DNA of 63,725 bases, counting the filler, from Intoshia linei (taxonomy: Eukaryota; Animalia; Orthonectida), in assembly GCA_001642005.1 (NCBI GenBank). It is 4 parts of 4 records of this genome, joined end to end, with 100 filler letters (N's around TTAATTAATTAA, not from the genome) between each part and the next. Parts side by side here need not be neighbours in the genome. Positions count along the whole stretch, not along the records: positions 54,345 to 63,725 come from LWCA01001367.1; 3 more parts are not named here. One strand, written 5' to 3'. Positions within the stretch are counted from its first letter, which is position 1, and every line of letters begins with the position of its first letter. The notes under the pieces were generated by a model that saw nothing but the letters and a program-made list of their open reading frames with translations, was not told the DNA's origin and made no database searches. Both the position numbers and the translations under genes were made by a program. Shown piece after piece: positions 54,344-63,725 of the stretch.

Positions 54344-54372
54344 NGTTATTTAATTATATATCATTAATATAA

Positions 54373-57555
<3,183 letters not shown>

Positions 57556-57578
57556 TCTATGTCAATAAATTTTTGTAT

Positions 57579-60325
57579 TTACGAAATTTGATTTAATATT
57601 TTTCCGACAAAGGTTGAATTATTTTTCCAAGTTTGGTAACTATTTTTGGTTTGGTCAATTTTTTGAAAGAAGATTGAGGGTTCCAGTCCTTTCCAATAGC
57701 TATAGATATATTTTCGGTGAATTGACTTTCCTTGGAATAAGGGTAAGGTAATTTTGTTATCTAAACATTTTTTATAACGTCATCATTATAAACTACCTGA
57801 TGTTTTCTTATATTTTCATTTTTTTTGTTTGATAAAAAAACATGAGACATGTTTACATCTTTTCTTTTTTGTTTAGGAGCTGTTACAATTATTCTATTAA
57901 TTAGAATTATTAATTAATAAAAAAATAAATTATATAAATTTTAATTTTCAATTTACAAAAAGTTAGTATTTGTTAGGTGCTGTTTAAAGATTTAATAAGA
58001 AAAATAAACATTGCTGACTAAAGGGGAAATGCCCGTGAACAATTAGTGGTCCAAAAACAATATTATTATAAAAACAACCTTCTTTTTGGTTCAATTTCAC
58101 AGCCTGGTCCACCCCAACAACCCCAGCCAGGTAAAGTCAAATCAATATCTTTAATTTGTTCTTTATTGACTTGTTCATCTTTCATTTCCTGAAAATCTTC
58201 AAAAACATCATCGTCAGCGAAAGCTTCTTGAATCAATTCATCGTTTTTTAATTTTAACTGGACGCCAATAGGCATTCTTTCATTATTAACAGCTACATGT
58301 ATATTTAACAGTGAAATTTAAATTAATTGAAAAAATACCTCTGTTGGTATCAATTCGAATTTTTATTTTTCGATCAAGATGTTTCTCAATATTTACATTT
58401 TTTGGCGACTTGATAGAATTATCAATTTTTAAATTTTTATCGACCATTTTGTCTCCTAAAAGTTTAGCAACATTTTGAGATTCTACGTCCAATGCAATAT
58501 ATTCAGTTGATTCTGAAATATGTTCAACAGAATTGTTAGGATTAGAGATGGATTCAACATCATGTTCTAAATCAGTTGGGCCAAATTTTTGACTTAACTC
58601 GCGTTTTTTGTTGTCCATATTGTTTCTTTTATCTTGTATCTATTTTAAATTAACTTTGAATAAATTTTAAATATTATTAACAATTTCGCTATTTTTTAAT
58701 AAAAGCAACTTTTTCTTCATGGATTTACTTGTACCGATTTTGTGATGCTTTAATGACATTCTTTCCTTAAATTTAGAAACTTTAAAAAATGAAGTGAAAA
58801 CAAACTTTTATTCTATCAATTTTAGCCTGTTCTAACATAATGACTCCTTTTTCTTTAGATTCGTTCATTTCCAGTTTTTTTAATATTGCTTTTTCTTCAA
58901 ATTTTTTCATTTTTCGGTATCTAGTTTAGTTAGAAATGAAAGATGATGGTTTACTTTTTGCTTTTAATTTTATTTTGATGTCTCATTTTATTTTCGCGGT
59001 ATTTTACTAAAGCTTTATGTTTTCTCAACTCATCACGGCGCATAATAGCCTAAAAATAATAAAAAAATATAAAATTATAATTATATAAAATTACATTTTG
59101 GAGTTGTAAATTGTCCACTTCTGGTGATTTTTCACGAGGCAATAATTTTATTATTGATTTTTCATGTTCTGTCAGAGCCTTTAAAAAATTAAAAAAATCT
59201 AGATAAATAAACCCGAAATTTTTCTAATTTGTCAACAGAATCATAATTGTCCATTTTATTACTTTTTAGAGGAAACGACACATTGTCAGCCTATAGTACA
59301 AGATTTACATTATTTTTAAACAAATACAAATTTCATATGATCAACAGTTTCGTTCCATTCGTTCAATTTTTTCTGAGATTTAGCATAAGTGACTTGTCGA
59401 TTTATCTAAATAATTTATATATAGCAGGGGTGGCCAACAGCCGATCCCGAAATTTTTTGAGTCAATCGCTGCAAAAATTATTTATTTATTTGACATATAT
59501 GTACTTAAAATAAATACTATCTACTTGAATTAGAAAATGATTTAGTAATTATGCCAATGTATACTCACTGAACATTGTTCACCTGTTCTTAACCTTAAGG
59601 CCTGTTAATAGTCTTAAGGAACAATTTTTGGGACAACAAAAATCAATGTCAATATTCTGTAAAAAGTCAGAAAAAGCAACGATTTCATCTTTTAAATTGA
59701 GCTACATGTTAGCGAAAAATGGAACACCGTTTTCAGATGGTCAATTTTTAAAAGATTGTTTTCTCGGAATTTTTGATGATTTTTTTCAAGCTTTCATAAT
59801 AACATATAATAAAATCTGCCATTGCAGATTTGAAATTATCACGTAATACTGTTATGAGACGAATGCGACACCCCGATAGAAAACACTAGATTAAATTTTT
59901 TTCATATAGTTATAAAATTTCGGATCAGCAAAAACCTAAATCAGATTGAACATTTGTCAAAAATTTTAAAAAAACGTTTAAAATGACTAACAAATTAATT
60001 TAAATAAACCTTCTCAGATTCAAGGGTCGACATTGGTTTTTCAACAACTTTATATTTTTTATTAAATTCATCAAGTTTTCGTTTCTTTGAACTGACAGAT
60101 TCGATTTTATTTGATTTTGTTTTTCTATACACAGAATTAATCATTTTAGATAGTTTAATCATTTTTGAGTCAAGAGGTATATTTGAAACGGAATCGTTTG
60201 TATTTTTTCCCCGAGTTTTAAATTTTCTAAACAGTTTTTATTTTTGCTTTATATTTAAGAATTTACACATTCTGTGAATCTAATTCAGTTATGGCTGTCA
60301 ATAATTTCGAATGTTTGTCTGTCAT
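57579..60325 (-). CDS. UTP14: U3 snoRNA-associated protein 14 (SSU processome)
   Basis: IQEAFADDDVFEDF..DIDLTLPGWGCWGGPG; ERMSLKH; C-terminal LPYPY..IGKDWN..KPKIVTKLGKIIQP; start MTDKHSKLL at 60325. Confidence 0.93.
59425..59880 (+). mobile_element. hAT (Buster/SPIN-like) remnant in a UTP14 intron
   Basis: Left end CAGGGGTGGCCAAC; ORF 59628-59846 ATISSFKLSYMLAKNGTPFSDGQFLKDCF. Confidence 0.7.
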
Positions 60326-60593
60326 ACTGTTTATAATACAGAATATTTAAAAATTATAATAAGTATATTTTTAAATGTTGTATTTCTCTAATTTCAATAA
60401 AATTAGCTTAAAGTTAAGATTTGCCAAGTTAATTATGTTGTAATAAAGTTTCAATAAATTTTAATTCAATTTACAAGTTTAAATTAATATTAACGATATT
60501 TCATTTTTCACATGTTTTGATAATGAATGTTTGATTTTCTTACATTCTGGTTTTGTTTTTTACTTTTTCGTTTAAGTCTAAGAATTATTGAAT

Positions 60594-60654
60594 ATGATGA
60601 CAATCATTTCTTACCTACATTCTTTGATGTATAATGAAATCGGATTTTGTCTGA
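60594..60654 (+). ncRNA. C/D-box snoRNA candidate A1
   Basis: Box C ATGATGA, box D CTGA; CTTACCTACATT is complementary to conserved LSU rRNA AAUGUAGGUAAG. Confidence 0.65.
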
Positions 60655-60665
60655 ATTTTTAGTTT

Positions 60666-60717
60666 GTGATGATTTTCTTTACCTACATTTGAATGAAATG
60701 AAAAAGAAATTATCTGA
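60666..60717 (+). ncRNA. C/D-box snoRNA candidate B (A-related)
   Basis: GTGATGA ... TTACCTACATT ... CTGA; keeps the same guide while the rest has diverged. Confidence 0.55.
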
Positions 60718-60739
60718 ATTTTTTTATTTTGTATTTTAT

Positions 60740-60795
60740 ATGATGAATGGTCTTTATGATGTATCCTGATTATATTTACATGCACTACCATCTGA
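60740..60795 (+). ncRNA. C/D-box snoRNA candidate C1
   Basis: ATGATGA, internal CTGA, GCACTACCAT followed by terminal CTGA; ACTACCATC is complementary to SSU rRNA GAUGGUAGU. Confidence 0.6.
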
Positions 60796-60835
60796 AGTTT
60801 TTTGACTTACGAATTTTGACGTTTTAATGATTGAA

Positions 60836-60896
60836 AGGATGAATATGATTAGTCTTTATGATGTATCTTGATTACACCCACATGTCTAATATCTGA
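60836..60896 (+). ncRNA. C/D-box snoRNA candidate C2 (diverged)
   Basis: Variant box C AGGATGA, shared GTCTTTATGATGTATCTTGATTA core, terminal CTGA with a different 3' guide. Confidence 0.4.
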
Positions 60897-60922
60897 AGTA
60901 TTTCAATTTTTATAGTTTAAAA

Positions 60923-60983
60923 ATGATGACAAATATTTCTTACCTACATTCTTTGATGTATAATGAAATCGCATTTTGCCTGA
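60923..60983 (+). ncRNA. C/D-box snoRNA candidate A2
   Basis: Paralogue of A1; also ATTTTGCC overlapping box D, complementary to LSU GGCAAAAU just downstream of the first target. Confidence 0.65.
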
Positions 60984-61030
60984 ACTGACATTTATTTAAG
61001 TATTTTGGAGAAACGGTTATTTTGTTTTAT

Positions 61031-61086
61031 ATGATGAATGGTCTTTATGATGTATCTTGATTATATTTACATGCACTACCATCTGA
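61031..61086 (+). ncRNA. C/D-box snoRNA candidate C3
   Basis: Differs from C1 by one base between boxes C and D. Confidence 0.6.
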
Positions 61087-62057
61087 AGTTTTTTAATACA
61101 CCGATGCAGCGTTTTCCATATATCGTCCACCAGATAATTTTGAAAAAATTAACTCACTAATTAAAAGTCAATTTATTACGTTTTCATTAAAAATTTTTTG
61201 CTTTTGTCTAGTAATGTTGATTTAGTGGTTTGCGATACATTTTGTAGTTTATTACCGCTCCGTCGTGAAAAAAAGTGTGGTTCACCAATATACTTTACAT
61301 TACAGTTAATTTGCTCCGTTGAGTAAACTACTCTGAGTAGGTTATTTTATTCGATATGAACCAATTCAAATTTTATGCTAACTTTGTCACATTTTCTTGG
61401 ACTAAAATCTAACCGCAGACAAATGCAATATCGCATATTTTTAAAATTATTACAACCAATTTTAAAGTTCAAAATCAAGCTTTTCAAGTCACTCAAATAA
61501 GTTGAAAATTGTGTGAATTAAATTAAATTTTTAAATTTAAACTCGGGTTTTTCATTGTCATTTGATTTAATTTTATGTCTACTAATCATAAAAAATAAAT
61601 AAAATAATATCAAAACAACTATAAAATTTAACCACGCTGTGTAGGCAGAAATTAATAGAGCGATATTTAAAGCCGTTATAATTATGAATAGATTGTTAAA
61701 AAAATTTTAGAACGCGTGGTGGAGTTTATTAGTATTGCTACGATTATTTACTTTTTATACTAATTATAATTGAATGTATTTTAAATCTCATGTAGAATAC
61801 TCATTGGATAGTTGTAAATTGTTAGACTAAACAATCTAATATTACGCTGTTCTAATTGTAAATTTTCGTTTATTTTACGTAGTCAAATTGTAGTTACAAC
61901 TAAAAATTTTACATAATGAGTTTTTATCAAGCCAGTCAATAGAAATTTCAATAGTGATAGTAAATACAAAATAATATCACATTATGTTATGGTAATAGCG
62001 CAAACATTTTATAGTTTTTGCGTTGATTGTTGTTTAATTTAAATTTAAAATTTTGAA

Positions 62058-63725
<1,668 letters not shown>

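Follow-up and report, generated by a model that had tools for sequence, protein, structure and literature searches.

Mammalian SNORD32A, SNORD33, SNORD34 and SNORD35A lie in separate introns of the gene RPL13A, one snoRNA in each. The target of SNORD33 is listed as human 18S-U1326 and that of SNORD34 as 28S-U2837. The SNORD33/32 clan has been followed back as far as the last eukaryotic common ancestor. In Drosophila, box C/D snoRNAs are found one per intron and H/ACA clusters are intronic. The silkworm has an intergenic cluster in which two duplicated C/D genes lie 251 bp apart, with conserved motifs upstream of each transcription start. Polycistronic snoRNA clusters are standard in yeast.

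Clusters of the same kind are also the standard in plants, trypanosomatids and Euglena. We describe here six box C/D snoRNA candidates from the orthonectid Intoshia linei that combine traits of these systems. The window, i.e. the whole stretch of DNA that was analysed, comprises 63,725 nucleotides, filler included, assembled from parts of four records of GCA_001642005.1. The cluster lies in the 9.4-kb piece (positions 54,345 to 63,725) that comes from contig LWCA01001367.1. As in RPL13A, SNORD33-type and SNORD34-type units stand side by side on one strand, and this adjacency implies that in both cases the two families have one transcription unit in common. The Intoshia cluster differs from the RPL13A group in that there is no ribosomal-protein host, most units have no exons between them and each family is locally duplicated. 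No SNORD35-like member was found in the cluster. Like the clusters of yeast, plants, trypanosomatids and Euglena, it has several snoRNAs on one strand and U-rich spacers that are short, an arrangement implying a joint precursor that is cut between units. Unlike in yeast, the host is an animal, the spacers of 11-47 nt cannot hold the stem-loops cut by Rnt1, and the precursor is a predicted one. The insect examples illustrate that animals can carry clustered snoRNA genes, but the Intoshia spacers are 5-20 times shorter than the 251 bp of the silkworm.

Organization of the cluster

A preliminary description of this DNA had placed six snoRNA-like units here, each bounded by a C box and CTGA. Reading of positions 60200-61500, in combination with a motif script, recovered all six, with their boxes, within 60594-61086 (Table 1). 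All are on the + strand, with a C box at the start and a CTGA D box at the end. The C box conforms to RTGATGA in five units and the D box is CTGA in all six. The exception, C2, has GGATGAA as its C box or, 8 nt further in, ATATGAT. By expectation, the two strands of the entire 9.4-kb piece would hold about 3.2 copies of RTGATGA; five are present on one strand within 493 nt. The box architecture and its clustering are thus far above chance. The spacers, in order, measure 11, 22, 41, 26 and 47 nt with a T content of 46-77%, in agreement with the T-rich, 11-47-nt spacers first reported.

The candidate internal D' and C' boxes are degenerate (TTGA and ATGAAA in group A, ATGA and TGATTA in group C) and are kept among paralogues. 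In folding, A1 forms a terminal stem of 4-6 pairs, A2 forms some pairs if its second CTGA is used, and the C units form a weak one or none. Minimum free energy folding yielded no significant structure, in line with what is usual for C/D snoRNAs.

Table 1. Positions of the snoRNA units, their boxes and guides, and the flanking genes (coordinates of the window)
Feature	Position	Strand	Description	Internal elements
UTP14 gene	57596..60325	-	Pfam exon matches; exon map of OAF65272.1	12 exons; second intron 59406-60009
Interval, UTP14 start codon to A1	60326..60593	.	268 bp, AT-rich; candidate divergent promoter, from geometry only	
Unit A1	60594..60654	+	61 nt, SNORD34-like	C box 60594-60600; D' guide 60607-60621; D' box TTGA 60624-60627; C'-like ATGAAA 60634-60639; D box 60651-60654
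Unit B	60666..60717	+	52 nt, shortened A-type paralogue	C box GTGATGA 60666-60672; guide 60673-60688; D'-like box TTGA 60689-60692 or TGAA 60690-60693; D box 60714-60717
Unit C1	60740..60795	+	56 nt, SNORD33-like	C box 60740-60746; D'-like ATGA 60756-60759; C'-like TGATTA 60767-60772; D guide 60779-60791; D box 60792-60795
Unit C2	60837..60896	+	60 nt, C-type paralogue, guides diverged	GGATGAA 60837-60843 or ATATGAT at 60845; 5' element 60846-60857, then ATGA; D box 60893-60896
Unit A2	60923..60983	+	61 nt, SNORD34-like	C box 60923-60929; D' guide 60936-60950; D' box TTGA 60953-60956; D box 60980-60983; second CTGA 60985-60988
Unit C3	61031..61086	+	56 nt, SNORD33-like	C box 61031-61037; D guide 61070-61082; D box 61083-61086
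Beta-tubulin gene	62059..63725	+	Pfam Tubulin and sequence reading; cut by piece end	introns 62116-62154 (39 nt) and 62533-63150 (618 nt)

Paralogy and selective conservation

The division into two paralogue groups and the loss of similarity outside the boxes, both noted previously, were reproduced. A1 and A2 are identical at 57 of 61 positions and C1 and C3 at 55 of 56 (93-98% inside the units). The 40-nt flanks of the paralogues are only 35-50% identical, compared to 32% expected at random from composition; the likeness of C1 and C3 extends about 6-8 nt past the boxes. All C boxes, terminal D boxes and assigned guides are spared by the four differences between A1 and A2 and by the single one between C1 and C3. 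The lone C1/C3 change turns an internal CTGA into TTGA and is the only one to affect a box. Alignment with A1 and A2 identifies B as an A-type copy shortened by 9 nt. C2, aligned with C1 and C3, keeps the internal box region and has different spacers. Within this contig, the repeat families of the units are confined to the cluster.

Behind each of the three C-type units comes an AG and then a T-rich run (60796-60803, 60897-60915 and 61087-61094). After C1 and C3 the sequence reads AGTTTTTT, and TTTTAT precedes both. These conserved flanks, which form no stem, may mark mature ends or a processing signal.

Basis of the rRNA target assignments

Targets were judged on generic eukaryotic rDNA from metagenomes, taken in place of Intoshia rRNA. 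The rDNA contigs were fetched by means of the two LSU words of the preliminary description; at least 119 contigs hold both, nearly all of them 7 nt apart. Six rDNA loci were compared. One of them (L001) was identified as SSU, 5.8S and LSU by Rfam and the other five, as SSU plus LSU, by BLAST against it. Words present in at least five of the six loci were considered conserved. Perfect antisense matches of at least 11 nt to such words number six in 18.8 kb (both strands); four of these are in the cluster, and each of the four is directly followed by a D'-like box. An rRNA-antisense 11-mer at 55863-55873 on the minus strand is not surrounded by boxes. A1, A2, B, C1 and C3 each have an antisense element of at least 10 nt whose end is 0-3 nt from the D or D' box that follows; C2 is borderline.

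Units A1, A2 and B

A1 matches the Rfam family SNORD34 (RF00147) over model positions 1-79 with 30.0 bits (E 0.017 over the piece, 0.001 over the cluster), and A2 does so with 24.3 bits. Both scores are below the gathering threshold of 38 bits, which leaves the two units outside formal membership. The guide UUACCUACAUU, the two-base gap and the UUGA D' box are nevertheless common to A1, A2 and the SNORD34 consensus, in the same register. The resemblance extends to the C box, the D box and the overall length. Indeed, A1 and A2 span the whole 79-position model in 76-77 nt, so that group A is not miniature: its length equals the SNORD34 consensus. The epithet 'ultra-short', applied earlier to all six, therefore holds for the compact B (52 nt) and C units (56 nt) and not for A1 and A2. 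Unlike SNORD34, A1 and A2 have a weak terminal stem and a D-side spacer that differs between the copies, at two positions. Moreover, the SNORD34 gene is an RPL13A intron resident, in contrast to the intergenic, tandem setting of A1 and A2.

The group A guide CTTACCTACATT is antisense to conserved LSU AATGTAGGTAAG, as had been proposed. The D' guide of A1 and A2 forms a 15-bp duplex (13 Watson-Crick and 2 G-U pairs) with LSU AATGTAGGTAAGGGA in all six generic eukaryotic rDNA loci. By the D'+5 rule, methylation is predicted at the U of LSU AAU*GUAGG, that is, the SNORD34 site. Since guide, gap and register are the same, A1 and A2 appear to be aimed at the LSU uridine of SNORD34, which we take to be human 28S-U2824 in older numbering.

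B also pairs with this LSU site, over 15-17 bp and with an anchored duplex score of 13 in six of six loci, and its positions 60679-60689 are a perfect 11-mer antisense to conserved rRNA. The pairing register is 2-3 nt off the A-type target. B would be aimed 2 or 3 nt downstream of that target, according to whether its D' box is TGAA or TTGA.

A second guide had been attributed to A2, directed against nearby LSU sequence. One part of this claim stands: GGCAAAAT lies 7 nt downstream of the LSU site in metagenomic rDNAs. The match of A2 to GGCAAAAT is however only 8 nt long and includes the first C of the D box, and the putative guide to LSU GGCAAAAU, with 7-8 bp that make use of the first D-box base, was rejected. 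The A2 D guide can form 12 bp with 5.8S GCGAAATGCGAT, in one locus only (L077) and at a place where A1 is mismatched. This 5.8S site is present in only four of the fetched rDNA loci and varies among eukaryotes. As a candidate, the 12-bp match would be at least as good as that to GGCAAAAU.

Units C1, C2 and C3

C1 and C3 match Rfam family RF00133 (SNORD33/SNORD32/Z195, which includes Drosophila snoMe18S-Um1356) with 26.0 and 26.6 bits, respectively, over model positions 46-79 only. The gathering threshold of this family, 44 bits, is likewise not reached, so that neither unit is a formal member. Only the 3' half matches, and the units are 56 nt long as against a model length of 85. What they have in common with the family is the predicted SSU target and, identical at 17 of 17 positions to the SNORD33 consensus, the D guide CAUGCACUACCAU plus CUGA. 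In both groups, therefore, scores are below gathering, yet the functional core of A1/A2 equals that of SNORD34 and the core of C1/C3 that of SNORD33.

The D guide of C1 and C3 forms a 13-bp duplex, with one or two G-U pairs, with SSU (G/A)TGGTGGTGCATG in all six generic rDNA loci, which upholds the complementarity to SSU rRNA claimed for group C. The U of SSU GGU*GGUGCAUG, equivalent to the SNORD33 site 18S-U1326, is predicted to be their target. The most likely layout of the group is a C box, a 9-nt spacer, ATGA, 7 nt, TGATTA, a 19-nt spacer with the guide, and the D box. The 9-nt 5' spacer of C1 and C3 is probably too short to guide; on this layout they would be single-guide RNAs.

The 5' element of C2 is antisense to LSU AAAGACTAATCG in six of six loci, through 11 Watson-Crick pairs and one G-U pair, a match that the best of 60 shuffled guides equals. 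Its D guide finds only 10-11-bp matches, in variable parts of rRNA, and its internal boxes bear a weak likeness to snoZ169 (E 0.33). Because shuffled guides score equally, C2 is treated as an orphan with one candidate target: it is possibly a guide for LSU AAAGA*CUAAUCG.

Neighbouring genes and sequences

The preliminary description regarded the cluster as intergenic and divergent from UTP14, with the UTP14 start codon about 270 bp away. This is correct: UTP14 is on the minus strand, opposite to the units, and its annotated start codon, at 60325, is 268 bp from A1. The 12 exons were obtained by mapping protein OAF65272.1 back onto the DNA. Pfam Utp14 (PF04615) matches were found on UTP14 exons, and one exon is 97% identical to the 529-aa Intoshia linei protein OAF65272.1 (A3Q56_07018); these searches used one exon at a time. 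Most UTP14 introns are 34-46 nt long, one is 185 nt and one 604 nt. The last of these, the second intron, is about 15 times the usual size and has a slightly higher G+C content. It contains a 72-aa ORF on the opposite strand (59628-59846) and may be an old insertion. Pfam returned no match for the ORFs in this intron or for those near the cluster.

The beta-tubulin gene is on the same strand as the cluster, about 970 bp downstream of it. In its 39-nt first intron a TACTAAC branch-point-like motif comes right after the donor. No RNA gene was recognised in its 618-nt second intron, by Rfam or by sequence reading.

Three other Rfam matches on the piece were discarded. A SmY-like match in the 604-nt UTP14 intron (E 1.2, not significant) and a snoMe28S-Gm1083 match (E 9) were taken as chance, and a snoMe18S-Um1356 match at 58495-58572 on the minus strand (25.3 bits, E 3.6), inside a UTP14 coding exon, is probably chance as well.

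Between a kinase gene and the 3' end of UTP14, positions 56053-57270 hold a block in which direct and inverted repeats are based on a motif resembling TTTTACCAAAC. The arms 56694-56738 and 57048-57092 are 91% complementary, and 56053-56082 and 57240-57269 are 93% complementary; the block has the appearance of a foldback or MITE-type element. At 55449-55706, downstream of the kinase gene, there are 3-5 degenerate copies of a 55-nt unit with ATTTTACCAA, spaced 81-122 nt apart, whose motif shows kinship to that block.

Precursor and transcription

The units are on one strand and too close to one another for separate promoters. An arrangement with one snoRNA per intron would have GT...AG around each unit and an exon between neighbours, and this is not what is found. 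The B-C1 spacer has no AG. Between A1 and B, the exon would be 3 nt long and its donor would be the C box of B itself. The other three junctions have room for exons of only 5-23 nt. A strict one-per-intron arrangement is thus excluded, in keeping with the earlier view that there is no room for it at every junction. As it is impossible at B-C1 and implausible at A1-B, several units would share one precursor. At least A1, B and C1 would have to belong to one precursor segment and be separated by an endonuclease. We hold with good confidence that at least part of the cluster has a shared precursor. It had also been argued that introns of this animal are too small to host snoRNAs. The size of most UTP14 introns bears this out, but the 185-, 604- and 618-nt introns on the contig make it a tendency and not a rule.

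The boxes, the paralogy, the conservation restricted to the units, the complementarity to rRNA, the likeness to two families and the splice-site constraint are best explained as a whole by six C/D snoRNA genes from two ancient families, locally duplicated and most likely co-transcribed as a polycistron. This overall reading is probable. That the six units are real box C/D snoRNA genes is, on its own, very probable, and we lean moderately towards an independent polycistron over an intronic cluster. In the scheme that this suggests, RNA polymerase II would transcribe the units together from the 268-bp interval, used divergently with UTP14. A promoter common to the cluster and UTP14 is a tentative element of the scheme, and somewhat doubtful. 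Endonucleolytic cuts in the U-rich spacers would release the units, which exonucleases would then trim back to each assembled snoRNP. No hairpins were seen in the spacers when units were folded with their flanks; the spacers are too short and too U-rich for Rnt1-type stem-loops. If expressed, A1 and A2, as SNORD34 orthologues, would with fibrillarin form snoRNPs that direct 2'-O-methylation of the LSU U given above, and the SNORD33-type C1 and C3 would guide methylation of the predicted SSU U.

The snoRNAs could be genuine and yet lie, as one cluster or in blocks, inside one or a few long introns of an unannotated non-coding host or of the beta-tubulin 5'-UTR, with release through splicing and debranching plus internal cleavage. 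The contig does have long introns (185, 604 and 618 nt), but none of the three holds a snoRNA according to Rfam. A donor-like GTTTAAGT is located 24 nt upstream of A1, an AG follows the D box of C1, C2 and C3, and micro-exons of 15-23 nt are formally possible at three junctions. These candidate splice sites weigh little, since GT and AG abound in a sequence of 75% AT; besides, with an AG two bases past the D box, a branch point would not fit outside the snoRNA. The intronic H/ACA clusters of Drosophila offer a precedent, but several units in one intron would still need endonucleolytic separation. We regard this arrangement as unlikely. Far less probable is that the units are separate RNA polymerase III genes, each with termination at the T run behind it. 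Yeast, plants, flies and worms are known to have Pol III-made snoRNAs, and five of the six units have a run of at least five T no more than 15 nt past the D box; such runs are, however, expected anyway in spacers with this T content. No A-box- or B-box-like element was seen in the units, and upstream promoters would not fit into spacers of 11-22 nt, which makes separate Pol III units unlikely.

A different question is whether the cluster is functional throughout. B, C2 and perhaps one copy of each duplicate pair could be decaying without a target. B has lost 9 nt relative to A with a shift in its D' register, and C2 combines a variant C box, a D guide with no conserved rRNA match and a 5' match that shuffled guides equal. 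B nevertheless keeps its C and D boxes and its 15-17-bp LSU duplex, the internal box region of C2 is unchanged, and neutral flanks of similar age are already near-random. Such partial function is conceivable, if somewhat unlikely. Finally, very AT-rich DNA is rich in TGATGA-like and CTGA words, and the units might be a satellite, transposon fragments or a chance pattern. Against this stand two independent family matches, guides to known methylation sites in the right register, conservation that is limited to the units and the lack of further copies on this contig. We consider that the units are hardly anything of this kind.

Evolutionary implications

The Intoshia units add new members to known families. 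Their arrangement has parallels elsewhere but is unusual, and unusually tight, for an animal. The elements belong to old, well-known families, and such clusters are ordinary in plants, fungi and protists. The literature searched contains no paper on Intoshia snoRNAs, and within it this cluster may mark the first time that snoRNAs have been annotated in an orthonectid. It provides two concrete, testable rRNA methylation sites. At least three junctions need a cut between neighbouring snoRNAs; we know of no enzyme that makes such cuts in animals.

Conserved C/D snoRNA families number roughly a hundred. The chance that the same two would be paired in Intoshia and in RPL13A is then unlikely, roughly a few per cent. 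Because the same families adjoin in mammalian RPL13A, the Intoshia cluster suggests that an old SNORD33/34 linkage has been kept and has outlived intron hosting. The adjacency of SNORD34- and SNORD33-type units at both loci points to a linkage older than the divergence of the bilaterians, which makes the history of snoRNA host genes testable.

A broader and speculative proposal, rather doubtful in its entirety, is that the shrinkage of most orthonectid introns (to about 35-45 nt) drove methylation-guide snoRNAs from ribosomal-protein gene introns into tight, independent polycistrons. These would share promoters with ribosome-biogenesis genes such as UTP14 and depend on an endonuclease as yet not known from animals, the SNORD32/33/34 linkage having survived the move. 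The cluster offers an example of how snoRNA genes may be organised in a highly reduced animal genome with tiny introns.
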